Shown in pieces: positions 7,595-61,229 of a stretch of DNA of 64,000 nucleotides; within the stretch, counting starts at the first letter, position 1, and each line of letters opens with the position of its first letter. Both the position numbers and the translations under genes were made by a program. The DNA comes from Rhodosorus marinus CCMP1338. Taxonomy: Eukaryota > Plantae > Rhodophyta. The notes beneath the pieces are model-generated. The model saw nothing but the letters and a program-made list of their open reading frames with translations, made no database searches and was not told the origin of the DNA. Location: the NCBI GenBank assembly GCA_029953675.1, contig JAMWBK010000012.1:434001-498000 (forward strand). Reading direction: 5' to 3'.

Positions 7595-7625
7595 AGGCTG
7601 CGACCTCGCAGCCGTGCCTGGAGCG

Positions 7626-9216: not shown

Positions 9217-9250
9217 AGTAAATCCCAGCCCAGTAAAACCACCACCACCC
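9217..9250 (+). mobile_element. Solo old-type family A tail
   Basis: tagtaaatcccagcccagtaaaaccaccaccacc, same type as the tails at 19031 and 24830. Confidence 0.55.
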
Positions 9251-16353: not shown

Positions 16354-16355
16354 TC

Positions 16356-16468
16356 TTCAGCGACATGCTTTCCGAGGCGCGCCATCGGCGCCTGGGGTTG
16401 CATACTTCCCTCCCTAGTTATTAGTTCATCTTCACGCCTTGCGTAGCGCTTCAGGCTATGCTAGTAAA
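16356..16468 (+). mobile_element. Family A ~112-nt 3' fragment fused to the 3' side of U2
   Basis: cagcgacatgc...gctatgctagtaaa. Confidence 0.93.
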
Positions 16469-20514: not shown

Positions 20515-20856
20515 TCTGATACCCTTCCAGGTGGGAATACACCCACTCACTTGCAACTATTAAAATGGGAGGGAGGTAAACTCTGGACGGCAGAGGTGTC
20601 ATATCGATGTGGGCTGGTGGGTGAAGAGATCCGTAAAAGTATGATATTTCATGAGCTTGGTTAAGAGATTGGATAGATCTGTTTAAGGTGTGATATTCCT
20701 GAGGTGAGTTGTCGGGCGGCATTCGTCGTCTTGGGGGTTGTGGTGGTGGAGTATTGGATGTAGCATTTTGTGTTCAAAGCCTTTTCGAAAGTATTGTTCG
20801 ATGCTGTAGACGAGTGGCCGGTACCTCTCCGAGTAAGAAACAGCTGTTTTGTAAGG

Positions 20857-23316
20857 ATGAGATTCTTCAGGAGAGCGAGAGGCGAGGAGGAAATTGAGGA
20901 AGATAAGGTTGTGCATGCCGCGACTGCAGACCTGAATAGGGCTGGGGATACGGGCAGCAAGGTGTCTAACATGGAGAGTGGTAAGGAAAACTGCGCAGAT
21001 GAGAAGAACGGGGATGCTCGAGGGTCAAATTTGGACGCCGTGGTGGATATGGAAGACTTGAAAACGAATCACATCAAGGTGGAGTATGACGAGCTGCCAC
21101 AGAAGAACATTGGCCTTGAGGTCCGTGGTGCTAAGGATATCCAGAGGCTCGCTGAGGAAACGAACTTTGACGCACCAACTGACTCTGTTGTTATGCTTGA
21201 CGTTGAAGCCTCGAACCCGTCGACAGTTCTCGATGTTGCCATGAAAGGCCTCGTGGAGTACGCAGCGTTTCCTGCCAGCCTTGCCGGCGAGGCTAGGGCT
21301 AACCTCTTGATCCAGGACGTGGACAGGTCAGTTGACCAACTTCAAGGTGACAAATACGTGTCTGGAAAGGCTTCCACCGAATTCATGTGGCGTAGATACA
21401 TCCAAGGGAACGGTTTTATCGTCACCTACGGGCGTGTGTACGGACTCGACAGGAGACTTTCGGTGATACTGCGCTTAGTGAAACAGGAAAACTGTTCCAA
21501 GTTCGATCCATCCGCTCCTGCGTTCGTAGCAATAGCGATAGCTCCGACGATCGAGCAGAAGGCTACCAAAACTGAATATGAAGTAGCTCGGAACTTTGCC
21601 GCAATGCTCCAGGACGAGGAGTTCTACAAGGAAGCATATTCTGCTCCGAATGAAGAGCACGTGAGATCTGCGGCGGCCAACTATGTGGAAAAGAGGGTGG
21701 TTTACGAGGATGACATGTACGCAAACGGATTGAAAGGAGGAGATGTCGGATTTGAGGATATGAGGCGAACTGGAAAACTCTTTGGGGGTTTAATTGCGGA
21801 TATCAAGAGGAAATATAAGTGGTCTGTGTATAAATCGGATTGGACCGATGGAATGACGGAGTGGAGAAGTATTTTGAAGTATATCTCGACAACCGCATGG
21901 CTGTATTTTGCTGTTATAATGCCCGTCATCGCCTTTGGATCCCTCAACAATGTGAACACGCGGCAGCAAATTGGGGTTTCCGAAACTGTTCTCTCGCAGG
22001 CAATATGTGGTGGCCTCAGTGCTCTGTTTTCAGGCCAGCCCTTGGCAATATCAATGACCACGGGACCTGTGACTGTGTTTATCGGTATCCTCTTCTCGTG
22101 GTCGGAGGGACTGAGAATTCCTTTCCTTCCGTTGTACGCGTGGACGGGGATCTGGACAGCGATAATACTGACTCTGATTGTCATGTTCGACCTCATAGCT
22201 TACGTACGATTTGTGGGGCAGTTCACGGAAGAGATCTTCTCAATGCTCGTGGCGCTTATCTTCATTTCGAACTATATCCAACCGTTGGTGAACACTGCAT
22301 ACGAAGAGACTACGGACATATTTTTGCTATCTTTCCTCCTGGCCGCCGGGATGTACGTCATGTCTAGGTGGTTCAGTTTGTTTGAGCGAAGATACATATT
22401 GAATGGAATCACGAGGACGTTGCTGGCGGACTTTGGAATGCCTTTTTCCGTCCTTGTTTGGTCGGGAATAAGGCAAATCTTCACCAACGTAAATGTGGAA
22501 ATGCTTCAGGTTCCAGAGAGTGGTGGAATCGTCACAACCAACGGTCGTTCTTGGATTGTGCCTCTAGGCGATTTACCCGTTGGATGCGTATTTCTCGCCT
22601 TTGTTCCGGGCCTCCTCCTTGCTATGTTGTACTGTGTTGACCAAAATGTCGCTGTACTACTCACCAACAAGAAGGAGAACAAGCTTAATAAGGGCGTCGG
22701 ATACTTTCTGGACATGCAGGTGGTCGCTGTTTCCGTATTCGTTTGTTCACTTCTGGGTATACCATGGGCAAACGCGGCCATCCCACATTCACATCTTCAT
22801 GCAAGGATACTCTCGGAGAAAGAGGAGTACGAATCTCATGGCAGAGTCGAGTATAGGGTTGTCCAAGCCAGGGAGGTTCGGATCACCAATTTTTTGACGC
22901 ACGTTCTGATTTTTGCCTCCATGTTCCTTCTATTTATCGTGGGATATATTCCAACATCTGTGGTCTGGGGTTTCTTCCTGTACATTGGTGTGGCAACTTT
23001 GGATGGAAACCAAATGTTCGAGAGGCTACTTCTGGTATTCACCCAGCCTACAAAATATCCACCAAACCACTACGTGAGACGCGTTCCGATGATGCGCATA
23101 GTTCTGTACACTCTGATTCAGTATGCTCTGCTAGTCCTGCTTTGGTTCGTGAATGTGAACTTCTATTTGCCTCCGGGTGGCGTCTTTAACGCGGGGCTCT
23201 TATTTCCATTTGTTATCATATTGTTTGTGCCAATTCGAATGTTCTTGCTCCCAAAGATTTTCCTGCGCAAGGAACTCCACGCCCTGGAAATGGAAAAGGA
23301 AGACTTTAGCGACTAG
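20857..23316 (+). CDS. SLC4: SLC4/band-3-family anion (bicarbonate/borate) transporter; start uncertain (ATG 20857 or ~20971)
   Basis: GKLFGGLIADIKRKY...SDWTDG, AFGSLN, ALFSGQPLAI, TGPV, FTEEIFS, DQN, KGVGYFLD, HLHA, VREVRITN, FLYIGV, NQMFER; many TM segments; intronless. Confidence 0.93.
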   Translation: MRFFRRARGEEEIEEDKVVHAATADLNRAGDTGSKVSNMESGKENCADEKNGDARGSNLDAVVDMEDLKTNHIKVEYDELPQKNIGLEVRGAKDIQRLAEETNFDAPTDSVVMLDVEASNPSTVLDVAMKGLVEYAAFPASLAGEARANLLIQDVDRSVDQLQGDKYVSGKASTEFMWRRYIQGNGFIVTYGRVYGLDRRLSVILRLVKQENCSKFDPSAPAFVAIAIAPTIEQKATKTEYEVARNFAAMLQDEEFYKEAYSAPNEEHVRSAAANYVEKRVVYEDDMYANGLKGGDVGFEDMRRTGKLFGGLIADIKRKYKWSVYKSDWTDGMTEWRSILKYISTTAWLYFAVIMPVIAFGSLNNVNTRQQIGVSETVLSQAICGGLSALFSGQPLAISMTTGPVTVFIGILFSWSEGLRIPFLPLYAWTGIWTAIILTLIVMFDLIAYVRFVGQFTEEIFSMLVALIFISNYIQPLVNTAYEETTDIFLLSFLLAAGMYVMSRWFSLFERRYILNGITRTLLADFGMPFSVLVWSGIRQIFTNVNVEMLQVPESGGIVTTNGRSWIVPLGDLPVGCVFLAFVPGLLLAMLYCVDQNVAVLLTNKKENKLNKGVGYFLDMQVVAVSVFVCSLLGIPWANAAIPHSHLHARILSEKEEYESHGRVEYRVVQAREVRITNFLTHVLIFASMFLLFIVGYIPTSVVWGFFLYIGVATLDGNQMFERLLLVFTQPTKYPPNHYVRRVPMMRIVLYTLIQYALLVLLWFVNVNFYLPPGGVFNAGLLFPFVIILFVPIRMFLLPKIFLRKELHALEMEKEDFSD

Positions 23317-25514: not shown

Positions 25515-25554
25515 TATGCTAGTAAAGCACATAGTAAAGTCCAGTAAAGCACAT
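25515..25554 (+). mobile_element. Family A tail-only insertion with a target-derived repeat unit
   Basis: tatgct agtaaagcacat agtaaagtcc agtaaagcacat. Confidence 0.7.
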
Positions 25555-25907
25555 TGCTGCGCTTTACTACTTAAATAGCTAGTGGAGAATTTGTGAATAG
25601 TTGGACTACGAGGGTGGAATTTTGCTTGATATCAAAGACATACAAGTCGTTGTGTGCGTTGTGTACGAGAAGAAGCCCGGGCAGCGATGGATATAGGGCA
25701 AGGAGAAACCCCGGGCCCTCAAAACCTCACCACTGCGAGTTCTACGAAAAGTACCAATGGGACTGTGACGGAAGGAGGCCGGCAGGCTGTACAAGAGAGG
25801 GCCACGGTACCTGTACCCCTTTCTTCTGAGCAAAGCACCAACCTAGCCGCTACTACGCGCCACGGGGACTGTTTGATGCCCAAACTTTCCTCGCCCGGTG
25901 CTCCGCA

Positions 25908-27068
25908 ATGACGACAGCTTACCTGCAACTGGATACTCCCCAAGCCGAGATCAGTCGGTTTTTCCACCTTGTGGAAGACCTCTACACTCACGCAACTCGA
26001 AAGGAAGAGTTGCAGAACCTGAACGCCAGACTCCATGACCTCTGCCGCCTGTCAACCCGTAATGCCCCGTGCCAGAGTATGCCACGACGCACACACCCCG
26101 ACGCACCGCCACCGGCCGCCGACTTGAGATTCGCCCCAAGACTTGACAATCAACATAACGATAATGACTGCGCAAACAATCAACTTACTAATGCTGACTT
26201 CCCAGCGCTAATGGTCGATGGGCCTCAGCTGCGTCGTTCGACCGGCAGCTACGCCCAGGCGGCTCGAGCTGCCCCCTCTGTGCTTCCTACTCGGCGTGCT
26301 CCTGCTTATTCACCCGCTAATGACCTAACGCAGCAGCAAGGTCTGAGGCATCTACATGCAGCAGTCGGTGCTACTACATGGACGCTTGATACCACACCGG
26401 TGTTTGGCACGTTTACCAACCTCCGGCCTCCCCGCGCAGATCCTACGTCGCCAAGGGACTTGTCCGCCTATCTAGAAAGAGCTCTTGGGCTGAATTCCCA
26501 ACAGCTCGTGCATGTGGACTACATCTCGGCACATGTGTTCGCGGTTCTACACCCTGATGCTGTTCCCCTCGTGCAGAGTGCCATCGACAGGGGTGTCTTT
26601 CGTAAAGGCATGTTCGCTGCCTACGCCAGTCGCTCTGCCCAGTCCCAGATCACGTTTGATACCACTCGGACCCCGAAAGTCTCTCTCCTTGTAGGCTTCA
26701 CGGAGAGCCGCGGTTTGACAGCGAATGAATGCTCGAAACTCGCGTTACGACGCGCCGAAGAACAAATGGACAGGCTGCGGAGTCAAATCTCCAGGAGGCC
26801 AGTCGGCTTCCGGATCATGAACCTCGTTTTTCAAGCTATCGATGCTCGCTTGGAGTATTTACGAGGCTTGGACACAACCAATCCTACCACGAGTCCTGTT
26901 GATGACGCCGCTGGGACCGGGAGCGAGGAGCTCGATGGGTCTCCTTCTCCACACCTGGCTACGGAAGGTGATTCATTGCATGTCTCAGATGCTGGGGTTT
27001 CGTCCACGGGTCCTCCAGACGCGCAGGTAGACAGTACAACGGACGTTCGCCAAGGTGCAGCTCCATAG
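25908..27068 (+). CDS. Family C ORF1 (386 aa as read; true C-terminus may extend to 27238)
   Basis: Long ORF upstream of the RT ORF; SYAQAARAAP motif echoes SYASVLRKG of A ORF1. Confidence 0.7.
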   Translation: MTTAYLQLDTPQAEISRFFHLVEDLYTHATRKEELQNLNARLHDLCRLSTRNAPCQSMPRRTHPDAPPPAADLRFAPRLDNQHNDNDCANNQLTNADFPALMVDGPQLRRSTGSYAQAARAAPSVLPTRRAPAYSPANDLTQQQGLRHLHAAVGATTWTLDTTPVFGTFTNLRPPRADPTSPRDLSAYLERALGLNSQQLVHVDYISAHVFAVLHPDAVPLVQSAIDRGVFRKGMFAAYASRSAQSQITFDTTRTPKVSLLVGFTESRGLTANECSKLALRRAEEQMDRLRSQISRRPVGFRIMNLVFQAIDARLEYLRGLDTTNPTTSPVDDAAGTGSEELDGSPSPHLATEGDSLHVSDAGVSSTGPPDAQVDSTTDVRQGAAP

Positions 27069-27234
27069 ACAACTCGTCACCGGACCCCTTCTTCGCCACC
27101 GTCCACCTCTGAGCCCTTGACTCCGCGAGTGCACCTGAACCTGGTCGGCAGATACCTGAGGATGAGAGCGAGAGCCCGCAAAGCAAGAAACCCCGTGTTA
27201 CGATTGCTGAACAAGAGGACCTTTCTCACCAAGC

Positions 27235-30200
27235 ATGACTGGGCGTCGTCCAAGTTCCAGTTCCCGCACGCGTAAGAGAGTCCGCCACCCGCAGCTGTTC
27301 TACATGGACGTGGACCGCTGGGTTACTCGGCTTGACCTGTTCCTGCAAACCCACACCGAGAATGGCACCCTTTGGTGGGCTTTGACTCACTCCCCTACGA
27401 ATACGCGAGAACACGTCCCTTCGGGACAAGTCCCAGCATGGAGCGCGCTTTTCAAATATGCCCTGGAAGTGGCCCTGGATGGCAGCGCCCCGGACCTCCG
27501 CCGCCTTTTTGTCCAGGTACTGCCTAGTCTGATCCTGGGATATGCTCGTGATCTTACCATGCCTGCCCAAGTCGAGATGCTGCTTGAGGGCGACTTCGAA
27601 CCCTTGTGGCGTGCAATTTCTGCTACTCGTCAGCGCACAACTGCCGCTTCTTCTGCAACTCGTACTCCGCGCTCGCCGTTTTCCTCCCGTCGTGTCCTCC
27701 ATAAGGCGAAAAATCGCCGCCTCTCTCAAGCAGCACAGCACATCCTTTCGACCCCGCTTGCCCCGAGAACTCAACAAACCTGGGAGGTCCTCGAAGCGAT
27801 GTTCCCGGACCTTCCCGACGCGGTCCTACATCCCCAACTGGAGGAGTGTTTGTCGGCCAGTCTCCATGCTTCTGCACCTCGGCCGAGTCCCTTATGGGAA
27901 GCTCGGCTGGCTTCGGATGAATCGATACTTGTACTTTTACAACGACTCCCCGCTGGTATAAGCCCTGGCCCGAGTGGCCTTCGGGTAGAGCACCTGCAGG
28001 CTCTCGAACACCATGTCCGCCCAGCCCTAGTCCGGTTCCTTCGAATGATTAGCACGGACCCCGAGACTCTGCCAGAGATCCTACTCCACAGCCTCCGGAG
28101 TAGTCGTATCGTGCCTCTGGCTAAGAACCCCACCTCGGAGCCGGGGACTTCTTCACCCCGCCTACGCCCCATTGGCATTCCCGAGGTGCTGCGCAAGGTT
28201 GCTTCACAATGGGTCTTACAACACGTCGTGCCCCGCGCTCGTGATTTCCTGCTGCCTACTCAACTCGGTGTTGGCGTCTCCGGGGGCTGTGAAGCAGTCC
28301 TCCACACGCTCCAGGCTCATCTACACTATGAACCTGACCACATTCTACTGAAACTCGAACTGGAGAACGCGTTTAACCGCATCGATCGCCGTCTGGCGAA
28401 ACGCATTATCGAAGCGCGCTTTCCGGAGTTGCTCCCCCTCTATGTGCTCGGGTATGGTCCTGATTCCGCGGATGGTTCGTACCACTTCGGCTGGCTTCCT
28501 GACGACAGCTCCCCTTCTTCCGCTCGAGACGGCTTCTTCCTCCGATCGCGTACTGGCGTTCAACAAGGGGATCCTCTCGCACCGGCGCTGCATGCCCTGG
28601 CCCTTTCGCCTTTTCTTATGGCGATGCGCACTCTCTTTCCCCGCATCACGGTGCTCGCGCTCCATGACGACATTAGCTTGGCGGGCCCCTACTACGATAT
28701 TCACGAGGCATTTCAGTGGAGTCAACGAGTTTTAAGCTCGCTCGGCGCGAGACTGCAACCGGATAAATGCGTCCTCTTTGGCCATCGGATTGACTCGCCA
28801 AGGCTTGTCAACCACGACTTCCCCGAAGTTCACGTTACGCGGCACGGCGTCATGCTGCACTCTGTTCCAGTAGGCACCCGGGCCTTTGTCATCGGAGCCT
28901 GCCGAAAGCTGCAAAACACACACGCCAAGCTTGTCAAAGGGATTCAGAAACTCCCCGAAGGCGAGTTGCAGACGAAGTTGGCGCTCTTCCGCTACTGTGC
29001 TGGTCCGCGGTTAGGCTATCATCTCCGCTGCCGGGCTCTTCCTTTTGGCGCGCTTCTTGCTACTGAGGCGGACACCATCACAATGCACGAGTTGGATACG
29101 TTGTGCGGAAGTCTGCTTCTTCTCCAAGGGCTTCCACGGGAGGAGTTGGAGACCGTGAAAGCCCAAATTCGCTTACCTGGCAAGTGGGGTGGCCTTGGCC
29201 TGGCTACGCGCGTTCGTATTCACCCGATTGCTTTTTATTCCGCTTGGACTCGCACGCGTCAGACTAACGCCGCTGACAATACCTTTCTGAGACGTCTGGG
29301 TACGGCGTGCCGCGGGACCGATCCCAATGCCGAACCTATTCTCGAGGATCTCTCCAGCTCAACGGATCTTCTGGACCAGCAGCTCTCGCTCGCTAGCCGC
29401 TGGACCACTTCTCGCCTCAGCTCCCGCACTTCTGCTCGTATTCGCGCCCTCGCTCTTTGGTCCAAGGCGCTTCCAACAGATGATGCCGCTCCAGCTTCCA
29501 TCAATCCTCCGCTCGCAGGTCCTCTACCACAAATATTCTCTCAGGAGAGTCACCGTAGAGCGTTTGAGGATATCGTGGATGATTCCGCGCTCGACGATTG
29601 CACTCGTGCTCGTGTCCGCTCTGCTTCTGGTGCTGGCGCTGGTGGCTGGCTTCGGGACCTCCCTAGCACAGGGTCTGAACCCCTTTCCACCGAAGAAATC
29701 CGATGCAGTTTACGCTTGCTTTTGGGGCTCCCGGTACCTGGTCTCCGCACTACCCCTGAATGCACAGTCTGTGGCAAAGCACACGCTGCGGATGGGACCC
29801 AACGTCTTTTTCACTGTTCCACTTCGGCTGGGAATAGGACTCTGCGCCATAATCGGATTCGTGATGAGCTCGTGAGTCACCTTCGGCGGTGGCACCTTCC
29901 GGATGTTCAGGTTGAGCCTTATGGGTTTTTTGAGGGTAGTCGTCTCCGCCCTGACATAGTCGTCCGTCATCACCGCACGGGTAAGCAGTACGTTATCGAT
30001 GTCAAGGTGGAATCCCCATGGCCCATCTCCTCGCTCGCGCCGCATGTCAATCGGGTTATGCCGCCGCCAATGCTGAAGCCGGGAAACGAGCCAAGTATCG
30101 GGATGCCATCGGTGACCACAATGATTTCCACTTTGTACCCTTCGCCATCGAAGGTTTTGGACGACTTGGCCAAGCGGCCCAAGACTTCATTACAGAAATT

Positions 30201-30380
30201 ACTGATCATCTTGAGCACAAAGCGGACGCGCAAACGCTCGTGCGGGTGGACCTTAATCGCGAGCTATGGCGTGGTACGGCTCGCCTGGCGATCCATGCCA
30301 TGCGCAAAGATAATCATTTTCGGACGATGTTCCCTATAGAAACTAGTCTTCTACCCCGCTCTGGGGTCTCCTTAGCCTAG
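27235..30380 (+). CDS. Family C ORF2: RT + Zn-knuckle-like + RLE; one single-base frameshift (1048 aa if repaired)
   Basis: LRPIG, QLGVGVSGGCE, ENAFNRIDR, GVQQGDP, LHDD, CTVC, RTLRH, RPDI...IDV, FVPFAIEGFG. Frameshift at C4 run 30014-30017. Confidence 0.9.
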
Positions 30381-30450
30381 CCCCTCCTGTTTTTCTCTCG
30401 TCCCTCTAGCGCTACATTCGGTAGTTGAAGTAAATGAAAGAGTAAAGTCC

Positions 30451-31037
30451 GAGGCGTCACACTCGCCTCAAGTACATCCTCAGCGAATTTTTGACTCGGA
30501 TAGGGCATACGGTTGAGGTTGAGTCGGAACTGCCCAGATCAATCTCGGACTCTGCACCGCCCCGTTGTATAGGCGATCTCCTCGTCTCCGACGCTGCTGC
30601 CAGACACTCAACATATGTGGACCTTGCGATTACCTGCCCCGTGGCCAGCGCCTACCTCACCGCAGCCGCCCGCCGCCGGGGGGGCCGCGGCTTCAGCCCT
30701 TCGAAGAGTTAAGGAACGACGGTATGCTGAGAGCATGGCCAGTCTGCCTTGCGCTGAGGGTCGCTCTCACCGGTTCCAGCCATTCATTGTGGAAAGCTTT
30801 GGTCACGTCGATTAGTCGGGTTTAGAGTGTTGCGGAAATGTTTTGCCGAGCATCCTACTGAATATTTGGCGCTCTTGAGGCGTTTAAGTGTCTCCCTTTG
30901 GCGATATTCCAGCGACATGCTTTCCGAGGCGCGCCATCGGCGCCTGGGGTTGCATGCTTCCCTCCCTAGTTATTAGTTCATCTTCACTCCTTGCGTAGCG
31001 CTTCAGGCTATGCTAGTAAAGTCCAGTAAAGTCCAGT
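30451..31037 (+). mobile_element. Young family A 3' fragment attached directly to the family C 3' end
   Basis: Near-identical to 4467-5050; agtaaagtcc on both sides. Confidence 0.92.
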
Positions 31038-31169
31038 ATAGGATGGAAATCCGCCGTAAAGGGCACTTTTTTATGGGTTTGATAAATGTTCCTCAGACCG
31101 TTCGATATTCGTCTGACGCCACTGGACTTCTTGTATTATCGGAAAGAGATGACAACCCGCTTCCAACCG

Positions 31170-33789: not shown

Positions 33790-36215
33790 ATATCTGGAAA
33801 AGTCAAGCTTGGAGTGGCTGCGCAAGAATTTTACCGAACATCCTTAAGAATTTCTGTGCTCCTCCCCCGCCGTTTAAGCATCGCTCTCTGGTGGTATTCT
33901 AGCAACATGCTCGACGAGGGCCGCCATCGCCGCCTGGGCTTACATGCTCTTATCTCTAGTCCCTAGTTTCCTTTTACGTCGTAGAGCATATGCCAGTAAG
34001 CCAGTAAAACCACGCCCAGATCAATCTCGGACTCTGCACCGCCCCGTTGTATAGCCGATCTCCTCGTCTCCGACGCTGCTGCCAGACGCTCAACATATGT
34101 GGACCTTGCGATTACCTGCCCCGTGGCCAGCGCCCACCTCACCGCAGCCGCCCGCCGCCGGGGGGCCGCGGCTTCAGCCCTTCGAAGAGTTAAGGAACGA
34201 CGGTATGCTGAGAGCATGGCCAGTCTGCCTTGCGCTGAGGGTCGCTCTCACCGGTTCCAGCCATTCATTGTGGAAAGCTTTGGTCACGTGGATAAGTCGG
34301 GTTTAGAGTGGTTGCGGAAATGTTTTGCTGAGCATCCTACTGACTATTTGGCGCTCTTGAGGCGTTTAAGTGTCTCCCTTTGGCGATATTCCAGCGACAT
34401 GCTTTCCGAGGCGCGCCATCGGCGCCTGGGGTTGCATGCTTCCCTCCCTAGTTATTAGTTCATCTTCACTCCTTGCGTAGCGCTTCAGGCTATGCTAGTA
34501 AAGTCCAAGTCCAGTAAAGTCCAGTCCAATAAAACCAGTAAACGAGTGACAACTTCGTGCAAGACTTCTGCGAACGAGTTTTAGCGCGCCATAAGCAGTT
34601 CACTGACGCCATTGAGCGCATACCGGACAGCATGCTACAAACTGCAAGCCTGCTTTCCCGCTTTTGTGCCGCCCCCCGGCTGAATTACTGGCTGCGAAGC
34701 CTTCCACCACTTTGGGGTTCGTGGATGGCAGCCAAGGCGGACGAGGCGATGCTTAAGCACTGGGGAACTCTCTTGGGTGAACCTCTGGATGTTGAAGCGG
34801 CTCCTGAGAGGGACCTAATTCGTGCCCAGATTTCCCTACCGTTGCGATTAGGTGGATTTGGAGTGGCCGACCGTGGACTTGTATCCTCGCCCGCGGCAGT
34901 CGCCTCCTGGGCTACCGCGCTTCGCACCTTGGTGAGTTTTCGGATGCGAAGTGCCTGCCTTTTGGCTAGAGCACTGACTAGCGAAGACCCCGCGACCCTT
35001 CCGCCACCGCTTTTGAGTATCTACGATGCTCTGTAACAGGCGTTTAGTAAGTTCAACGCCGTGCCGGACGAGAATCGATCCAGGTTCCGCTCCTGGAGAA
35101 AGCTGTTATGGGGACGTACTGAGGCGATCGAGGACTCTCCCATCGACAGAGTCCTCGTAGACGAGGGGGAAGCCAGTCCCGGGTCATCTGTTCCAGATTA
35201 CCCGGGTCTGAGCCGATTGTGGAGCTAGCGCACTGATGTGATTCAACATAGACTCACCTGGGGCCAACACAATGCCGCTCACGCAATCTTGCTCAACTCT
35301 CCCCTCACACAACCTACCACCGCCGCTCCCCTCCGCGGCATGGGAGGCAACCCGTCGCACTTGTGGTTGACCACGCTTCCTTCGTCAATGGGTCGCCGTC
35401 TCGATGCATTTCAGTTCCGCTCTGCTGCACAGATCTATCTGGGTTTACCACAAGCTCCGTGGCACTCTAATCGGCCGTATTTCTGTCAGGGATGTGAGAG
35501 TCGGATCGATGCTTGTGGTTACCACTTCTTAGGTTCATGCGGACTGTTGAGAGGTCTTCGTACGAGGCGTCACAGTCGCTTCAAGTACATTCTCAGCGAA
35601 TGTTTGACTCGGGTAGGGCATACGGTTGAGGCGGAATCGGAACTATCCAGATAGGTCTCGGACACGGCACCGCCCTGCTGTATCGTAGATCTCCTCGTCT
35701 CTGATGCAGCCGCCAGACGCTCAGCATATGTTGATCTCGCGATTACATGCCCTGTGACAAGCGTCCATCTCACGGCTGCCGCCCGCCGTCGGGGAGCAGC
35801 GGTTTCGGCCCTTCGCCGCGTGAAGGAACGACGGTATGCTGAGAGTATGGAAAGTATGCCTGGCGCTGAGGGTCGCTCCCACCGGTTCCAGCCTTTCATT
35901 GTGGAAAGCTTTGCTCACGTGGAGAAGTCGGGTTTGGAGTGGTTGCGGAAATGTTTTACTGAGCATCCTGTTGAATACTTGGAACTTTTTCGGCGTTTAA
36001 GTGTCTCTCTGTGGCGATATTCGAGCAGCACACTTGCCGAAGCGCGCCATAGGCGCCTGGGTTTGCATGCTTCCCTACCTAGTTCTTAGTTCCTTTTCAG
36101 GCCTTGAGTAGCGCTTCAGGCTATGCTAATAAAGCAGCGTAGCGCTTTAGGCTATGCTAGTGCTAGTAAAGCCCAATAAAACCTAATAAAGCAGTAAACG
36201 AACAAAACCAGTAGA
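33790..36215 (+). mobile_element. Head-to-tail array: old A (33790-34013), young A (34014-34543), A' (34548-36135), mini A (36136-36160), tail
   Basis: Each unit ends in hairpin/tail and abuts the truncated 5' end of the next. Confidence 0.88.
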
Positions 36216-46502: not shown

Positions 46503-47540
46503 CGCCCCGGGGATTCGTCCTGCGCCTGAACCTGTTCTAGGGGAGATTGACCCAGTGGTTGCCGCAGAAGAAGAAGTTCCAGTTGATCCTCCTGATGATT
46601 CCCAGCGCGCTGGGAGCCGAGCTCAAGCACGCACGGATGCGCTGCAAAATATCCTTTCTTGGGACTTGCACCGTGCTGCATATGGCCGACTCCTCGCGCA
46701 GATGGTCTCATCTTCTCGCGCTCGCGCCCGCCTACGTAGTCTTGGAGGGGTTATTAGCTCTCAGTGGCTCATGACCGTACCAGCCTTTCCGCCACTCACA
46801 CTGTCGGATTTCGAAGTGCGTACTTCACTGCGCTTATACCTCGGCTTACATCAGCCCCCTTGGCCGTACGAGATGGGTTCGTCGTGCCCTCTCTGCTCTC
46901 AGACTGAAGACAACGCAGATTTTGGCGCCCACCTGCTCGCTAGTTGCCCGGCGGTGAAAGGTGCTCGAACCCGCCGCCATACACGGATCTTGAACCTGTT
47001 ATACCGGGAACTTCGGCCTATAGTCCGGCAAGCCGGTCTGGAAATCGAACGTGAGAAACCTTTACCCGTCGCGGACTTTCAAAATGATGAACGCCGTGTA
47101 GCCGACCTGGTGATCACCTGTGACGACAGCCGCCGTACCACATACGTTGATCTTGCTGTTCCTAACCCTCAAGCTAGTCGTTATCTCCCGGCTGCGGGGG
47201 AGCGCCGTGGATCTGCCGCCGCCAGCATGAGACGCCGCAAAGAGATCAAATACGCGGGGGCTTTGTCTTCCCCTGGTGTTCGTGCTTCGGCACTAGCACA
47301 TCGCTTGGTACCCCTGATCATTGAGTGCTTTGGGTTCATGGACTCTGTTGGTTCTCGCTGGCTTCGGGAGTTGTTCCGCGAACGCCCTGACCGTCTTCAA
47401 TCGTTGTTTACCCGTTTAAGTTTCCTGCTGTGGCGCATGAATGCCGCTTTGATGTTGGAGGCGCGAGTACTTCGCCGCGCTTAGTCTTTTTTTCCCCTCG
47501 GGGTTTTTTTTTTCAGCCTCCGATTAAAACCATTCGTTCG
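46503..47540 (+). mobile_element. Young family B 1.04-kb 3' fragment with 9-bp TSD
   Basis: ORF 46555-47484 is open; TSD ttcttgttc at 46494-46502 and 47541-47549. Confidence 0.95.
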
Positions 47541-48874
47541 TTCTTGTTCAGTATGGTCCGTTATAAGTCCAGATCTGGGACCCTATGGGTCAATCGAAAA
47601 GGCGGAAACCAATCAAGCTCATATTGACTGAACTTAGATGGGGGGTTTCTGGCAGTCGGACTTCGTCACTGATAAGCGCTCTGCGAGTGGAACAGTTGGC
47701 GAATGCAATGGTTCCTGTTTTTCAAGATCTTGGAGACTGGATTCGTCTATAGACTGATCCTAGAAGCAGTCAAGTGTGTTTGGTTGGGAATAAAGTAAGA
47801 ACAAAAGGAATCTGCGCTGCTCATATACATTGGTTTTGTTAATAGACAATGACTAGAAACGCACCAACCAGCAACCTACCCCATGTGTAGGCCAGTGGAT
47901 GCCGGGCAAGCATGAGTAGTTCTACTTTGACTTTTTGGTGAGGACATTGAATAGGGTTTGGGAGTTTGGTCTTGATGACATTGAGAATGTGCTAATCTGT
48001 GATCATCTCCCGTAGTTGAAGCTTTCAGCGGACTACAGACGCCAATTCTGAACCCTGGGCTTTCAGCCGAATCCTTGCTCATCTCTTTCGTCCCGCACTC
48101 TTCGTTGCGCGTTCGTATCTTTTTCATTGAAGAGGCTTGAAGCCTGTGCTTCGTTTTTCTTAAGGACTAGGCCCAATATTCAAGGATGCCCTCTAATAAG
48201 TCTCGCTTTCTTGAGTTTTCTGCTTGATGCTCCCTCCTCCTAGCTGTGTCAAGTCGTTTTGATGGAGAGTCTCTCAAGTTTTAAGATAATAAGTTGATGT
48301 TTAATCTGTTCACGTGAGGCAGCACCCCCGCAGCCTATGAAATTTGAAGTTGAGGTCAAAAGTATATGTTCGACGGGGTCCCTTCACAGATCATCGAAAA
48401 GTTCGATCTTGCTGTCGGTGATGCTATCGAGCACCGCGGAATGCCCAAGTACGTCCGTCCCACTCAACCAGTTTTCCGTGTCTCCTACAACTGAATTCAT
48501 GCTGTTGCCCTTGTTCGTCTCATTCTTGGTTTTTTGGTCACTGTCGGTCAAAGTCAGGCTCGATCCGCGCAGCCGGAAAGACCTCATCGAACCCAGCGAT
48601 GCGAGCTATCTTCCTTCTCAAAACTCAACAAAGAACCTTTTCTCGTTGCTCAACAATGTTCAGATCCAGTTAATCCTCTTCTAGTCTCCTCCCTTATAGC
48701 CCCCGAACCCATGATATACTGCTTCATACCTAAAAAGTCCTACCCATCCCCAGCGAACGCTCGTACTCCAGTTGTTTCTCCCCACTTACACATTACTCCA
48801 GATCTCCCACGACTTCTACCGATCTCGGGAATATGAGACCATCTGCGCGAGAAGAGTGGTGTTGTGCCGAAGAA

Positions 48875-54360: not shown

Positions 54361-54441
54361 CTTTCCCACGAACTTGGTTTTCACACCTCATTCAAACGAA
54401 CTTCTGTCGTTCCAGTGCCGACGTGAATTCCGAGTGAACTG

Positions 54442-54457
54442 GACTTTACTAGCAGAA
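54442..54457 (-). mobile_element. Family A 16-nt tail-only insertion with 12-bp TSD
   Basis: ccgagtgaactg (54430-54441) gactttactagcagaa ccgagtgaactg (54458-54469). Confidence 0.85.
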
Positions 54458-54472
54458 CCGAGTGAACTGAAT

Positions 54473-54935
54473 CGAACGAATGGTTTAATCGGAGGCTGAA
54501 AAAAAAAACCCCGAGGGGAAAAAAAGACTAAGCGCGGCGAAGTACTCGCGCCTCCAACATCAAAGCGGCATTCATGCGCCACAGCAGGAAACTTAAGCGG
54601 GTAAACAACGATTGAAGACGGTCAGGGCGTTCGCGGAACAACTCCCGAAGCCAGCGAGAACCAACAGAGTCCATCAACCCAAAGCACTCAATGATCAGGG
54701 GTACCAAGCGATGTGCTAGTGCCGAAGCACGAACACCAGGGGAAGACAAAGCCCCCGCGTATTTGATCTCTTTGCGGCGTCTCATGCTGGCGGCGGCAGA
54801 TCCACGGCGCTCCCCCGCAGCCGGGAGATAACGACTAGCTTGAGGGTTAGGAACAGCAAGATCAACGTATGTGGTACGGCGGCTGTCGTCACAGGTGATC
54901 ACCAGGTCGGCTACACGGCGTTCATCATTTTGAAA
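54473..54935 (-). mobile_element. Young family B 3' fragment
   Basis: Near-identical to 47075-47540. Confidence 0.95.
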
Positions 54936-55113
54936 GAGACAAGTCGACGCAGCAAGCCGACAGTGTTCAGAGACATAGAGAAACTGCACCCTACCTCTGC
55001 CTGAAATTACGGGGAAAAAATTGACATCTAGGTGGGCGGAAGAACGAAAAAACTAAAGAAAAAGCCTACAAAGAAGGTTGTGTGGGTATGTGCGGCCATC
55101 GATGTTGGAACTG

Positions 55114-56683
55114 GCTTTATTGGACTGGACTGGACTTTACTAGCATAGCCTGAAGCGCTACGCAAGGCGTGAAGATGAACTAATAACTAGGGAGGGAAGC
55201 ATGCAACCCCGGGCGCCGATGGCGCGCCTCGGAAAGCATGTGGCTGGAATATCCCCAAAGGGAGACACTTAAACGCCTCAAGAGCGCCAAATATTCAGTA
55301 GGATGTTCAGCAAAACATTTCCGCAACCACTCTAAACCCGACTTATCCACGTGACCAAAGCTTTCCACAATGAATAGCTGGAACCGGTGAGAGCGACCCT
55401 CAGCGCAAGGCAGACTGGCCATGCTCTCAGCATACCGTCGTTCCTTAACTCTTCGAAGGGCTGAAGCCGCGGCCCCCCGGCGGCGGGCGGCTGCGGTGAG
55501 GTGGGCGCTGGCCACGGGGCAGGTAATCGCAAGGTCCACATATGTTGAGCGTCTGGCAGCAGTGTCGGAGACGAGGAGATCGGCTATACAACGGGGCGGG
55601 GCAGAGTCCGAGATTGATCTGGGCAGTTCCGACTGAGCCTCAACCGTATGCCCTAGCCGAGTCAAAAATTCGCTGAGGATGTACTTGAGGCGAGTGTGAC
55701 GCCTCGTACGGAGACCTCTCAACAGTCCGCAGGAACCCAGGAATTGGTAGCCACAAGCGTCAATCCGGCTCTCACATCCCTGACAGAAAGACGGCCGATT
55801 AGAGTGCCACGGAGCCTGTGGCAAACCGAGATAGATCCGTGAGGCAGAACGGAACTGGAAAGCATCGAGACGATGACTCAATGACGACGGTAGAGTGGTT
55901 AACCACAAGTGCGAGAGGTGGCCTCCCATGCCGCGGAGACGAGCGGCAGTGGTAGGCGGCGTGAGAGGAGAATTGAGCATGACTGTGTGAGCGGCACTGT
56001 GTTGGCCCCAGGTGAGGCTATGTTGAATCACATCAGTGCGGGAGCTCCACAATCGGCTCAAACCCGGGTAGTCTGCAACAGGTGACCCGGGGCTAGCCTC
56101 TCCGTCATCGGCAAGAACTCGGTCGAGGGGAGAATTTTTATTTTTTTTTGGCTTTATTAGCATAGCCTACAGCGCTACGCAAACCGTGAAAAGGAACTAA
56201 GAACTAGGTAGGGAAGCGTGCAAACCCAGGCGCCGATGGCGCGCCTCGGCAAGCATGCTGCTCGAATATCGCCACAGAGAGACACGTAAGCGCCGCAAAA
56301 TTTCCAAATATTCAACAGGATGCTCAGTGAAACATTTCCACAACCACTCCAAACCCGACTTCTCCACGTGACCGAAGCTTTCCACAATGAAAGGCTGGAA
56401 CCGGTGGGAGCGACCCTCAACGAGAGGCAGGCTGGCAATATTACCGTCGTTCCTTCACGCGGCGAAGGGCCGAAGCAGCTGCTCCCCGGCGGCGGGCGGC
56501 AGCCGTGAGACGGGCGCTTGCCACTGGGCATGTAATCGCGAGGTCAACATATGCTGAGCGTCTGGCGGCAGCATCGGAGACGCGGAGATCTGCGATACAG
56601 CGGAGCGGTGCCCTATCCGAGACCGATCTGGGTAGTTTCGATTCCCCCTCAACCGTATGCCCTACCCGAGTCAGACATTCGCT
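55114..56683 (-). mobile_element. Composite insertion: young A (55114-56131) + oligo(A) linker + A' (56150-56683) inside one 12-bp TSD
   Basis: TSD atgttggaactg at 55102-55113 and 56684-56695. Confidence 0.9.
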
Positions 56684-56702
56684 ATGTTGGAACTGCATAT
56701 GC

Positions 56703-56978
56703 GATGAATGAACGAACGGGTTTAATCGGAGGCTGAAAAAGATAAAAACCCCGCGGAGAAAAAAGACTAAGCGCGAGGGAAAATCGCGCGCCTCCAACAT
56801 CAAAACAGCGTTCATACGCCACAGCAAGAAACTCAAACGGATATACAACGAAGGCAGACGGTCAGGGCGTTCGCGGAACAATCCCCGAAGCCAACGAATA
56901 CCCAACGGAATCCATAAACCCAAAGCACTCAATGACCAGAGGTACTAGGCGATGGCCTAGAGCCGAAGTGTGATCAAA
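56703..56978 (-). mobile_element. Family B' 3' fragment
   Basis: RERPDRLPSL...LLWRMNAVLMLEAR; tail aaacccgttcgttcattc. Confidence 0.85.
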
Positions 56979-56992: not shown

Positions 56993-58747
56993 ATGGATTT
57001 ACTGGCTTTATTGGACTTGACTTTACTAGCATAGCCTGAAGCGCTACGCAAGGCGTGAAGATGAACTAATAACTAGGGAGGGAAGCATGCAACCCCAGGC
57101 GCCGATGGCGCGCCTCGGAAAGCATGTCGCTGGAATATCGCCAAAGGGCGTTATTAGCATAGCCTACAGCGCTACGCAAACCGCGAAAAGGAACTAAGAA
57201 CTAGGTAGGGAAACGTGCAAACCCAGGCGCCGATGGCGCGCCTCGGCCAGCATGCTGCTCGAATATCGCCACAGAGAGACACTTAAGCGCCGCAAAATTT
57301 CCAAGTATTCAACAGGATGCTCAGTGAAACATTTCCGCAACCACTCCAAACCCGACTTCTCCACGTGACCAAAGCTTTCCACAATGAAAGGCTGGAACCG
57401 GTGGGAGCGACCCTCAGCGCGAGGCAGGCTGGCCATACTCTCAGCATACCGTCGTTCCTTCACGCGGCGAAGGGCCGAAGCAGCTGCTCCCCGGCGGCGG
57501 GCGGCAGCCGTGAGATGGGCGCTTGCCACAAAAATCCATCTCATCTGCCGGAATCGAAGCAGCGACCCTAGGATAGCTGCCGCAACTACAGTCATTCATT
57601 CAACTACAGTCCCATGCTCTGCCAACTGAGCTAAGATGAGTGGTGTATGGATTTACTGGACTTTACTAGCATAGCCTGAAGCGCTACGCAAGGCGTGAAG
57701 ATGAACTAATAACTAGGGAGGGAAGCATGCAACCCCAGGCGCCGATGGCGCGCCTCGGAAAGCATGTCGCTGGAATATCGCCAAAGGGAGACACTTAAAC
57801 GCCTCAAGAGCGCCAAATATTCAGTAGGATGCTCAGCAAAACATTTCCGCAACCACTCTAAACCCGACTTATCGACGTGACCAAAGCTTTCCACAATGAA
57901 TGGCTGGAACCGGTGAGAGCGACCCTCAGCGCAAGGCAGACTGGCCATGCTCTCAGCATACCGTCGTTCCTTAACTCTTCGAAGGGCTGAAGCCGCGGCC
58001 CCCCGGCGGCGGGCGGCTGCGGTGAGGTGGGCGCTGGCCACGGGGCAGGTAATCGCAAGGTCCACATATGTTGAGCGTCTGGCAGCAGCGTCGGAGACGA
58101 GGAGATCGGCTATACAACGGGGCGGTGCAGAGTCCGAGATGGATCTGGGCAGTTCCGACTCAACCTCAACCGTATGCCCTATCCGAGTCAAAAATTCGCT
58201 GAGGATGTACTTGAGGCGAGTGTGACGCCTCGTACGGAGACCTCGCAACAGTCCGCAGGAACCCAGGAAGTGGTAGCCACAAGCGTCAATCCGGCTCTCA
58301 CATCCCTGACAGAAAGACGGCCGATTAGAGTGCCACGGAGCCTGTGGCAAACCGAGATAGATGCGTGCGGCAGAACGGAACTGGAAAGCATCGAGACGAT
58401 GACTCAATGACGACGGTAGAGTGGTTAACCACAAGTGCGAGAGGTGGCCTCCCATGCCGCGGAGACGAGCGGCAGTGGTAGGCGGCGTGAGAGGAGAATT
58501 GAGCATGACTGTGGATTTACTAGCACAGTCTGAAGCGCTTCGCAGGGTGTGAAAGGAAACCAGAAACTAGGGAGAAAAGCGTGCAAACTCAGGCGGCGAT
58601 GGCGCGCCTCGGCGAGCATGCTCCCATAGCGCGACAATTAACCGGGTAGGGTCCCAGATATTCAACCGAATGGGCAGTAAAACATTTCCGCATCCACTCC
58701 AAGCTGGACTTTTCCATTTGCCCAAGGTTTTCCACCATGAAACGTAG
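56993..58747 (-). mobile_element. Five-unit array: A (56993-57148), A' (57151-57529), pre-tRNA (57530-57648), A (57649-58513), older-type A (58514-58747)
   Basis: All units co-oriented and abutting; candidate TSD gcacctcat(a/g)ct(g/a)g at 56979-56992 and 58748-58761. Confidence 0.85.
57539..57640 (-). tRNA. tRNA-Tyr: tRNA-Tyr(GTA) with 11-nt canonical 37/38 intron; disrupted (7-nt insertion plus 11-bp TSD, and G53C)
   Basis: Acceptor stem CTCATCT/AGATGAG + A73; D arm GCTC-AGTTGGCA-GAGC; anticodon arm TGGGA-CTGTAG[intron]A-TCCTA; T loop TTCGATT; no encoded CCA; TTTTT 4 nt downstream. Confidence 0.93.
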
Positions 58748-59193: not shown

Positions 59194-59795
59194 GTTAGTT
59201 GCCCGGCGGTGAAAGGTGCTCGAACCCGCCGCCACACACGGATCTTGAACCTGTTATACCGGGAACTTCGGCCTATAGTCCGGCAAGCCGGTCTGGAAAT
59301 CGAACGTGAGAAACCTTTACCCGTCGCGGACTTTCAAAATGATGAACGCCGTGTAGCCGACCTGGTGATCACCTGTGACGACAGCCGCCGTACCACATAC
59401 GTTGATCTTGCTGTTCCTAACCCTCAAGCTAGTCGTTATCTCCCGGCTGCGGGGGAGCGCCGTGGATCTGCCGCCGCCAGCATGAGACGCCGCAAAGAGA
59501 TCAAATACGCGGGGGCTTTGTCTTCCCCTGGTGTTCGTGCTTCGGCACTAGCACATCGCTTGGTACCCCTGATCATTGAGTGCTTTGGGTTGATGGACTC
59601 TGTTGGTTCTCGCTGGCTTCGGGAGTTGTTCCGCGAACGCCCTGACCGTCTTCAATCGTTGTTTACCCGCTTAAGTTTCCTGCTGTGGCGCATGAATGCC
59701 GCTTTGATGTTGGAGGCGCGAGTACTTCGCCGCGCTTAGTCTTTTTTTCCCCTCGGGGTTTTTTTTTTTCAGCCTCCGATTAAACCATTCGTTCG
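59194..59795 (+). mobile_element. Young family B 0.6-kb 3' fragment with 11-bp TSD
   Basis: TSD tatagaaacac at 59183-59193 and 59796-59806. Confidence 0.95.
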
Positions 59796-59823: not shown

Positions 59824-61101
59824 CCAACCTGCAGCCGCAGTAGGGGCCTGGGGAACCGCACTTCCCACTTTGAGCAGCTTGGGTATCTCGAAGTTCCGCA
59901 ATTTGATGGCGAGCCTCTCGCGGGGTGTCTTGCTTCCCAGCGTACCGGAAAGCGCCCAAGACTTGTTTCTGGAGCTCCAAACCGCCCTGAATTCCTGTAC
60001 TAGTCTCCCCGAAACCGTTCAACCCCGTCTTCCTGACTGGCGAGCTGTATTTAACCGCTCTCGAGGCTCCGCCCCGGGGATTCGTCCTGCGCCTGAACCT
60101 GTTCTAGGGGAGATTGACCCAGTGGTTGCCGCAGAAGAAGAAGTTCCAGTTGATCCTCCTGATGATTCCCAGCGCGCTGGGAGCCGAGCTCAAGCACGCA
60201 CGGATGCGCTGCAAAATATCCTTTCTTGGGACTTGCACCGTGCTGCATATGGCCGACTCCTCGCGCAGATGGTCTCATCTTCTCGCGCTCGCGCCCGCCT
60301 ACGTAGTCTTGGAGGGGTTATTAGCTCTCAGTGGCTCATGACCGTACCAGCCTTTCCGCCACTCACACTGTCGGATTTCGAAGTGCGTACTTCACTGCGC
60401 TTATACCTCGGCTTACATCAGCCCCCTTGGCCGTACGAGATGGTTCGTCGTGCCCTCTCTGCTCTCAGACTGAAGACAACGCAGATTTTGGCGCCCACCT
60501 GCTCGCTAGTTGCCCGGCGGTGAAAGGTGCTCGAACCCGCCGCCACACACGGATCTTGAACCTGTTATACCGGGAACTTCGGCCTATAGTCCGGCAAGCC
60601 GGTCTGGAAATCGAACGTGAGAAACCTTTACCCGTCGCGGACTTTCAAAATGATGAACGCCGTGTAGCCGACCTGGTGATCACCTGTGACGACAGCCGCC
60701 GTACCACATACGTTGATCTTGTTGTTCCTAACCCTCAAGCTAGTCGTTATCTCCCGGCTGCGGGGGAGCGCCGTGGATCTGCCGCCGCCAGCATGAGACG
60801 CCGCAAAGAGATCAAATACGCGGGGGCTTTGTCTTCCCCTGGTGTTCGTGCTTCGGCACTAGCACATCGCTTGGTACCCCTGATCATTGAGTGCTTTGGG
60901 TTGATGGACTCTGTTGGTTCTCGCTGGCTTCGGGAGTTGTTCCGCGAACGCCCTGACCGTCTTCAATCGTTGTTTACCCGCTTAAGTTTCCTGCTGTGGC
61001 GCATGAATGCCGCTTTGATGTTGGAGGCGCGAGTACTTCGCCGCGCTTAGTCTTTTTTTCCCCTCGGGGTTTTTTTTTCAGCCTCCGATTAAACCATTCG
61101 T
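59824..61101 (+). mobile_element. Young family B 1.28-kb 3' fragment
   Basis: Near-identical to 11077-12358; single-G loss at 60442-60443. Confidence 0.95.
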
Positions 61102-61229
61102 TCGACTTGTCTCTTTAGGCCATGTCTAGTTTTAGGATTTTTCTCTACTTAAGGTCTTTTGACCTTGGTTTAAGATCGGAGTCAACATAAACACATGCTG
61201 GATTTAGAAGTCCAGCTTGTCTTTACTGC

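Follow-up and report, generated by a model that had tools for sequence, protein, structure and literature searches.

A two-part LINE chimera in the red alga Rhodosorus marinus, probably produced by template switching during target-primed reverse transcription

Genomic setting and LINE families

The sequence analysed here is a 64-kb stretch of nuclear DNA of the red alga Rhodosorus marinus CCMP1338 (hereafter, the window), located on contig JAMWBK010000012.1 of the long-read based assembly GCA_029953675.1 (PMC10250338), where record position 434001 corresponds to position 1 of the window. The GC content of the window is 52%. Non-LTR retrotransposons are dense throughout, and the region between 53.8 and 61.4 kb consists almost entirely of LINE copies. 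At least three LINE families, with about 30% protein identity among them, are represented: E1, A (with a diverged subfamily, A') and B. In the E1 family, both ORF1 and ORF2 are intact, the latter encoding a protein of 1,034 aa. Reverse transcriptase (RT) domains were identified in three ORFs of the window, and the coordinates of these and of the other features discussed below are given in Table 1.

A profile of the C-terminal domain, derived from five copies, matched the C-termini of R2 proteins with solved structures (9nl3_A and 9dou_A; E=6e-6), with the C-x2-C...H...C motif of a CCHC zinc knuckle and the RH and PD...D motifs of a restriction-like endonuclease aligned in the match. The nuclease motif reads PD...DVK in the intact element but AD...DLA in the A and B families, which leaves the catalytic lysine of the A and B nucleases uncertain. 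Neither the intact ORF2 (1,034 aa) nor the upstream ORFs of A matched Exo_endo_phos, the profile indicative of an AP-type endonuclease. Judging by this predicted domain content, namely, an RT, the CCHC and PD-(D/E)xK motifs and no AP endonuclease, the elements appear to be non-LTR retrotransposons of the restriction-like-endonuclease (R2) group. Assignment to a named LINE clade through homologues was abandoned because the nearest relatives beyond Rhodosorus are unnamed proteins with at most 33% identity, several of them from sponges. One distant homologue of the intact ORF2 contains a Ulp1 protease domain, as in elements of the NeSL group.

Table 1. Coordinates of the chimera and of related features of the window
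Feature	Position	Strand	Evidence or remark
Reverse-transcriptase ORF	5679-6689	-	Pfam RVT_1, E range of three ORFs 1e-9 to 1e-13
Reverse-transcriptase ORF	9628-10782	+	Pfam RVT_1, same E range of three ORFs
Reverse-transcriptase ORF (E1 ORF2)	27235-30339	+	Pfam RVT_1, same E range of three ORFs
ATATAAGAATCG duplication	2256-67 / 2512-23		around simple 248-bp A copy
Complete U2 snRNA	16161-16357		Rfam 147.6 bits, uninterrupted over model positions 1-192
CAGTTCACTCGG duplication	54430-41 / 54458-69		around 16-nt abortive A-tail micro-insertion
B copy beyond 165-bp flank	54468-54936
Flank unique within window, 165 bp	54937..55101	.	no other match in window or other Rhodosorus loci
Target-site duplication, element 3' side	55102..55113	.	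exact 12-mer; element strand CAGTTCCAACAT
A part, 3'-terminal ~1,021 nt of A-subfamily LINE, 5'-truncated internally	55114..56134	-	homology
Linker A9-T-A5 (15 nt) between A' 3' terminus and A 5' break	56135..56149	-	direct reading
A' part, 3'-terminal 534 nt of A'-subfamily LINE RNA	56150..56683	-	ends GCTATGCTAATAAAGCC (terminus AATAAAGCC)
Target-site duplication, element 5' side	56684..56695	.	exact 12-mer, abuts first A' base
B' context, 3' end of older LINE copy of unrelated family	56705..56968	-	83-84% identity to 3' ends of B copies
CAGTAAATCCAT duplication	56993-57004 / 57647-58		around three-part chimera
Pre-tRNA-Tyr	57539-57640		anticodon GTA (by eye), 6-nt leader, intron, TGGATTTTT trailer (U5)

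Anatomy of the chimera

Two LINE fragments of different subfamilies, both on the minus strand, are fused within the LINE-dense region. Along the element (minus) strand, the order is a copy of the duplication, the A' 3' fragment, A9-T-A5, the A 3' fragment and the second copy of the duplication. The duplicated 12-mer, ATGTTGGAACTG, occurs in exactly two copies in the 64 kb, precisely at the outer borders of the chimera, and no further copy was detected even when one mismatch was allowed. By our own arithmetic, the chance of a 12-nt identity at two preset homology borders, with a slack of about +/-5 nt at each, is about 1e-5. Whether the duplication measures 11 or 12 bp depends on the assignment of its first base, a C on the element strand, which might just as well terminate the tail AATAAAGCC. 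Around A alone or A' alone, direct repeats of at least 6 nt are absent. The initial annotation, in which a single 12-bp target-site duplication bracketed the entire structure and neither part had a duplication of its own, is borne out on both counts.

The A part, which shares about 98% identity with the youngest A copies (4466-5480, 57648-58513 and 16467-17576), encodes the end of an ORF with the CCHC and restriction-like endonuclease motifs and terminates in the tail ...GCTATGCT AGTAAAGTCC AGTCC AGTCC AATAAAGC(C). For the A' part, identity is 96.8% with the A' copy at 57151-57529 and 92.6% with the copies at 15506-16044 and, on contig 13, L037:10886-11425. The two parts are only 82-84% identical to each other, whereas each is 97-98% identical to its own subfamily. 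Private substitutions number 10/540 (1.85%) in A and 14/530 (2.64%) in A'. An open reading frame (55180-56163) runs across the A/linker/A' junction.

At the end of A' on the element strand, ...AATAAAGCC is followed by AAAAAAAAATAAAAA, and the whole junction of 40 nt reads GCTATGCTAATAAAGCC-A9TA5-TTCTCCCCTCGACC. The A9-T-A5 sequence is absent from the corresponding position of every other A copy compared. This linker had originally been assigned to 56132-56149; its composition stands, but it is 3 nt shorter, and the A part extends to about 1,021 bp, because the A homology already starts at 56134/56135 (ATT[C]TCCCC versus the consensus ATT[G]TCCCC). Outside this locus, the 40-nt junction did not recur in the window, in 21 kb of contig 13 or in five JGI contigs, a comparison that covered about 100 kb of Rhodosorus sequence, against a genome size of 31 Mb.

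The chimera lies about 9 bp downstream of the tail of the B' copy, which ends in ...GATTAAACCCGTTCGTTCATTC. Neither the window nor other Rhodosorus loci contain a paralogous empty site, that is, an uninterrupted counterpart of the joined flanks. The flanking gene, encoding 363 aa, is present in one assembly only, GCA_029953675.1, and a search for genome assemblies of other strains found none.

Several A copies, namely, 4464-9142(-), 16467-17576(+), 14631-16042(+) and 34544-36134(+), reach upstream of the A border of the chimera, and in the first of these the upstream sequence enters a reverse-transcriptase ORF. A thus represents the 3' end of a LINE that is no shorter than 4.7 kb; a non-autonomous A element of 1.0 kb is ruled out, and with it the initial view of the 1.0-kb A segment as an RNA unit. 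It also follows that the A RNA would have been left at an internal position, about 1,021 nt from its 3' end, rather than at its 5' end. The donor break site is GAGGA/UUGUCC, and no pausing hairpin was predicted at this site (z=0.49). The normal 3' ends of the family lack poly(A) and consist of variable units, such as AGTAAAGTCC, AGTCC, AATAAAGCC and AGTAAAACC.

We classify this structure as a chimeric retrocopy because its parts come from different RNAs, are co-oriented and are directly fused; the downstream A part is a 5'-truncated LINE with a normal family 3' tail available for priming; the upstream A' part, read in the direction of cDNA synthesis, starts at the 3' terminus of its own RNA; and one duplication typical of the family surrounds the whole, with none around the parts. 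A single duplication around fused retrocopies is the accepted criterion for such chimeras (PMC2104539), and both the criterion and the mechanism have been established for mammalian L1 chimeras (PMC4476161) and Magnaporthe MGL chimeras (PMC2104539).

Target-site duplications and target preference

Besides that of the chimera, three clean 12-bp duplications of the family were identified, each occurring only twice in the window (Table 1), and a 10-nt sequence, CAGTAAACGA, which starts with CAGT, brackets the composite at 34546-36191. Every resolvable insertion of the LINE family in the window is associated with a duplication of 10-12 bp. Three of the four 12-mers, including that of the chimera, also start with CAGT, which matches the ...CCAGT... 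tail units and suggests that the nicked target end may pair with the RNA tail to begin cDNA synthesis. The plus-strand 3' end of the duplication copy at 55102-55113 is ...AACTG, a candidate primer for first-strand cDNA. Two other candidate duplications were dropped: GTGGTTTTACTGG, considered for the composite at 3609-9242, has five occurrences and reads as a tail unit on the complementary strand, and the 10-mer TGCTGGGGTT, around the chain at 13.1-17.6 kb, is at the chance level.

Other chimeras of the same family

Of the approximately 22 A-type 3' ends present in the window, about 10 adjoin a further segment of RNA origin rather than flanking DNA. In one case, this segment is a complete U2 snRNA, the 5' end of which joins an A tail (...AGTAAAGTC/TTCTCGGCC) and the 3' end an internal position of A. 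This U2 sequence is not an insertion into a single A copy because it sits between two separate 3'-terminal A fragments, of 121 nt and 111 nt. Targeting of U2 in the manner of Utopia elements was ruled out as well, given that U2 is uninterrupted and the LINE fragments abut its termini. In another case, a tRNA-Tyr segment, apparently copied from a primary transcript of polymerase III, joins an internal position of A' directly, followed by A' (379 nt) and A (~149 nt), all within the CAGTAAATCCAT duplication. On contig 13, an A' copy ending in AATAAAGCC is joined to 237 nt of B, and composites are also present in JGI contigs from Rhodosorus-like samples (including L033 and L036).

Three composites join A' to A, at donor positions of about 121, 149 and 1,021 nt, and these different positions indicate separate events. 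The A' terminus AATAAAGCC is used also at 57151, 364 and L037:11425. In the sequence covered, all six A' copies of the type ending in AAUAAAGCC (56150, 57151, 16042, 36134, 364 and L037:11425) are followed by a 3'-terminal fragment of another element, never directly by flank. The locus described here had been put forward as the strongest internal evidence of template jumping; of the cases bracketed by a duplication it is indeed the cleanest, but as evidence of joining at the RNA level the chimeras with U2 and pre-tRNA are no weaker.

The oligo(A) linker

Across the window, the 21 kb of contig 13 and the five JGI contigs, a run of eight or more A's at an element 3' end was found in the linker of the chimera only, that is, at one of about 30 A/A'-type 3' ends examined, and at least two junctions (57151 and L037:11425) join the same A' terminus, AATAAAGCC, to the next segment without any A's. 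Routine polyadenylation of A' RNA is therefore unsupported, and the earlier description of the A' template as a polyadenylated RNA is weak; if such polyadenylation were routine, most jumps onto A' ends should have carried A's. None of the transcript-like JGI contigs (L002, L033-L036) ends in A's. A metagenome scan for A/A' 3' ends was discarded because its 30 matches extended over the queried 16-21 nt only, as expected by chance.

Most likely, the linker derives from a short oligo(A) on one particular A' RNA rather than from a general poly(A) tail, with slippage of the tail, non-templated addition or the copying of a third A-rich template as live alternatives. It is quite possible that the single-event chimera is real and the linker is not poly(A) at all, being instead a slipped, degenerate A-rich tail unit of A', a copy of a third A-rich template or the product of non-templated or surveillance-type oligoadenylation. 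Besides the uniqueness of the oligo(A) and the A-free AATAAAGCC junctions, this possibility is favoured by the spacing between AATAAA and the A-run, which is only 3 nt and thus unusually short for canonical cleavage. The last 8 nt of the linker, owing to the T, read AATAAAAA, the same start as that of the tail unit AATAAAAACC in the A'-like copy at 3608. RTs of the R2 type add non-templated nucleotides before jumping (PMC8857657). On the other side, a run of nine A's is found in no tail of the A/A' family, elements of the family are present in transcriptome assemblies that, as far as the nature of the samples can be inferred, were probably poly(A)-selected, and a single substitution in 15 nt is compatible with the private divergence of about 2% in the flanking parts.

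A single integration event and its alternatives

The structure as a whole is probably a dead, two-part chimeric retrocopy generated by a LINE with a restriction-like endonuclease in one event of target-primed reverse transcription that involved a template switch. The enzyme would nick the plus strand of the window after ATGTTGGAACTG, and the freed ...ACTG-3' end would anneal to CAGU in the repeat tail of an A-subfamily RNA and prime cDNA synthesis. After about 1,021 nt, deep inside the A RNA, the RT would move to the 3' end of an A'-subfamily RNA, which would consist of ...AAUAAAGCC and a short A-rich extension, copy 534 nt of A' and halt. Cleavage of the other strand 12 bp away, followed by fill-in, would then yield the 12-bp duplication around both parts. 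Of this account, the sequence itself shows the anatomy, the lone duplication, the identity of the subfamilies and the internal position of the break, whereas the order of the steps, the template switch and the source of the A-rich linker are inferred.

A single event is supported by the presence of one duplication at the outer borders, its 12-bp length, which is typical of the family, and the absence of a repeat around either part. Consistent with this interpretation, the two parts are co-oriented and each is a 3'-terminal fragment, with the priming tail on the downstream A part and A' starting at the RNA 3' terminus; their private divergence, and hence their age, is similar; and sister chimeras, including those with U2 and pre-tRNA-Tyr, are frequent. 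These same observations uphold the original proposal of one integration that joined the cDNAs of two subfamily RNAs, A first and A' second, the latter from its 3' terminus. That the RT left the A RNA and resumed on the A' RNA likewise is the best explanation, with the amendment that A was left internally. The mechanism is plausible given that the C-terminal domain of these elements is R2-like and that the R2 RT jumps between templates in vitro (PMC8857657), and the three A'-to-A composites with different donor positions represent separate events. Against this explanation count the lack of a predicted pausing hairpin at the donor site and the length of the linker, 15 nt being more than the few nucleotides of non-templated addition by R2.

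It is unlikely, although equally compatible with a single 12-bp duplication and equal ages of the two parts, that retrotransposition used a single template RNA that was already composite, so that one integration occurred without any switch at this site. Such an RNA could originate by read-through of an older tandem locus (A', an A-rich stretch and truncated A) or by ligation of an A' RNA to a broken A RNA before reverse transcription, and we extend the same judgement to the two versions taken jointly. The window contains many tandem A-type arrays that might be transcribed together, such composites are present in the Rhodosorus-like JGI contigs L033 and L036, the interrupted A9-T-A5 appears somewhat more genomic than a fresh poly(A) tail, and RNA ligation has been published as an alternative for U6/L1 chimeras (PMC11838501). 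However, the junction was not encountered a second time in the window, L037 or the JGI contigs, and the junctions of the three A'-to-A composites all differ, as would be expected more readily from repeated fresh events. Moreover, read-through merely shifts the origin of the composite one step back and requires a promoter upstream of a 5'-truncated A'. Sequence alone does not distinguish among a template switch, ligation of RNAs before reverse transcription and transcription of an older composite.

Two successive insertions, either of A' with an A-rich tail and a duplication followed by A landing between this tail and the downstream duplicate, or in the reverse order, seem quite improbable given the lack of an internal duplication and the base-perfect placement at the tail/duplication border that would be required. 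The elements do favour landing at or beside the tails of other copies, the CAGT target resembles tail units, the chimera itself lies 9 bp from a B-family tail, and some R2-type elements, such as Utopia in arthropods, make no duplication (PMC4640811). Nevertheless, duplications of 10-12 bp accompany all insertions of this family that can be resolved in the window, repeats of at least 6 nt around A or A' alone are missing, no other element copy with an A-rich tail is available as a target, and the private divergence of the two parts is similar. Still more remote is an origin at the DNA level, through an assembly error, unequal recombination or capture of fragments at a double-strand break. The near-complete occupation of the 53.8-61.4 kb region by LINE copies might invite such errors, and homopolymer lengths may be inexact in a long-read assembly. 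Recombination between A and A', however, would produce an in-register hybrid rather than a 3' end joined to an internal point, and neither misassembly nor end-joining would be expected to leave non-repeat sequence exactly duplicated over 12 bp at the two outer borders.

Under a broader extension of the single-event switch, template switching would be a routine integration step for this group of red-algal LINEs, and the A' lineage an obligate hitch-hiker on such jumps; we find this extension doubtful. In that case, only RNAs with ...CCAGU... tail units would pair with the nicked CAGT target and so initiate cDNA synthesis, whereas A' RNA ending in AAUAAAGCC, U2 snRNA and nascent pre-tRNA would enter only as second or third templates, and the oligo(A) would be a rarely preserved trace of the genuine 3' terminus of an acceptor RNA.

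Comparison with known systems

Chimeric retrocopies produced by LINEs are already known from mammals and fungi, and the Rhodosorus locus adds one to their number. Mammalian L1 chimeras include U6/L1, U3/L1, 5S/L1, Alu/L1 and mRNA/L1 fusions (PMC4476161, PMC11838501). The Rhodosorus chimera shares with these the head-to-tail, co-oriented fusion, in which the downstream 5'-truncated LINE provides the priming and the upstream part starts from the 3' end of its own RNA, as well as the single duplication around the whole and the junction at an internal LINE position (PMC4476161, PMC11838501). Unlike L1, which combines an AP-type endonuclease with poly(A), the Rhodosorus elements have an R2-like enzyme, tails of the (AGTAAAGTCC)n type and a fixed 12-bp duplication. 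Furthermore, both partners in the Rhodosorus chimera are LINE subfamily RNAs, and junctions are far more frequent than in the case of L1 (~10 of ~22 ends in 64 kb).

The bipartite and tripartite chimeras of Magnaporthe (MINE and WEIRD/Mg-SINE/MGL), likewise from a non-animal host and with internal LINE switch sites, were validated by one flanking direct repeat of 10-20 bp (PMC2104539). MGL, however, belongs to a different LINE clade in a host of a different kingdom and switches at GCC(A/U) near hairpins, whereas the Rhodosorus donor site has another sequence and no predicted structure.

In vitro, the R2 RT performs non-templated addition and end-to-end template jumping, joining cDNA across templates and landing on acceptor 3' ends after the addition (PMC8857657), which resembles the arrangement seen here. 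The two differ in that R2 jumps from the donor 5' end, whereas the Rhodosorus donor was left internally, and in that R2 is specific for a site in 28S rDNA, whereas the Rhodosorus elements are dispersed, with a weak preference for CAGT. The association of restriction-like-endonuclease LINEs with U2, along with the Ulp1 domain in one ORF2 homologue, is reminiscent of the Utopia/NeSL group. However, Utopia inserts at a fixed site inside U2 genes, whereas the Rhodosorus U2 is a full-length, uninterrupted RNA copy fused end-to-end.

Head-to-tail arrays of 5'-truncated LINEs joined through oligo(A) are characteristic of Drosophila telomeres (HeT-A/TART). Those arrays arise by repeated priming at chromosome ends and lack duplications, in contrast to the Rhodosorus chimera, which occupies an internal site, has a 12-bp duplication and carries oligo(A) at one junction only.

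Implications

The locus itself is a textbook-quality chimeric retrocopy without a function, and its value lies in the context: the signature of a template switch is seen here in a new setting, a red alga and an R2-like LINE. Template jumping by this class of enzymes is well documented in vitro, but we know of no catalogue of chimeras that they form in vivo, and our literature searches found none for R2-like LINEs. The junctions also map the 3' ends of the template RNAs, which remain hidden in normal insertions. Given the frequency of the junctions and the capture of U2 and pre-tRNA, Rhodosorus could serve as a natural system for studying how templates are chosen and changed, which also bears on R2-based gene-insertion tools. 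The frequency of junctions in this R2-like LINE group is a more interesting lead than the single locus.

A' copies followed by other elements, and probable chimeric retrocopies

All six A' copies (the diverged subfamily of LINE family A) that carry a GCTATGCTAAT(AAAGCC)-type 3' end are followed by a 3'-terminal fragment of another element, and none abuts flanking DNA directly (see the table below). Where the tail of an A'-like copy contains CCAGT (3608, 19082, and L037:20561), the copy does terminate a chain.

Coordinates of elements, retrocopies and composites in the window, in L037 (another Rhodosorus contig) and in the JGI contigs L033 and L036
Feature	Position	Strand	Remarks
GCTATGCTAAT(AAAGCC)-type A' 3' ends	364, 16042, 36134, 56150, 57151; L037:11425		
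tRNA-Tyr(GTA)+A'+A composite	56993-57658	-	bracketed by CAGTAAATCCAT
U2 snRNA copy, complete	16161-16357, inside 16045-16468	+	between two separate 3'-terminal A fragments
16-nt insertion	54430-54469	-	flanked by 12-bp duplication CAGTTCACTCGG
B-family copies	11895-12357, 47076-47575, 54468-54936, 59331-59795, 60642-61105; L037:15407-17995		
LINE E1	~25550-31041	+	intact ORF1 and ORF2
E1 ORF1, intact	25908-27068	+	386 aa
E1 ORF2, intact	27235-30339	+	1,034 aa, canonical PD...DVK
SLC4/band-3-type bicarbonate transporter ORF, intron-less	20770-23316	+	848 codons; Pfam HCO3_cotransp, E=7e-135
A-like element + A 3' fragment	L033 1-1211; L036 1424-3792		JGI samples 3300016967 and 3300017118

Two chains include copies of small RNAs. 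In the tRNA-Tyr composite, the tRNA copy is fused to A' (379 nt), followed by A (about 149 nt), and a single duplication brackets all three parts. With its intron, U5 trailer and 6-nt leader, the tRNA copy resembles a primary polymerase III transcript that was reverse-transcribed and inserted; less probably, it is a genuine tRNA gene with insertions to either side. The U2 snRNA copy, together with the adjoining A fragments of 121 nt and 111 nt, is part of a head-to-tail chain (14631-17595) that has the appearance of a chimeric retrocopy in several parts; a search for a duplication around this chain gave none that was convincing.

The 16-nt insertion, immediately preceded by a B-family tail, consists of TTC and TGCTAGTAAAGTC, the final 13 nt of an A element, and looks like an integration aborted just after priming.

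Element families and a candidate enzyme source

E1 could be an active element that supplies the enzyme. Its endonuclease motif is PD...DVK, whereas A and B have AD...DLA. E1 and A have a tail motif in common, and a 596-nt A fragment lies directly 3' of E1's own end, ...GAGTAAAGTCC. The long A copy (4464-9142, minus strand) and a truncated copy that lies 50 kb from it (57648-58513, minus strand) share 99.9% identity, yet the coding region of the long copy is broken into four ORFs, which could reflect real frameshifts or long-read homopolymer errors. The B-family copies are 96.6-99.8% identical to one another (>99% in four of them), suggesting very recent activity of this family, and their tails are (GTTC/ATTC)n, unlike the A-type units. 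Host genes are few in the window, the transporter ORF among them.

Composites in probable Rhodosorus transcriptome samples

The two JGI samples appear to be Rhodosorus transcriptomes. Their contigs carry A-like elements that are 86-88% identical and are followed by an A 3' fragment of 157-169 nt (94%). Composites of the same kind are therefore present in another strain, where they are probably transcribed.
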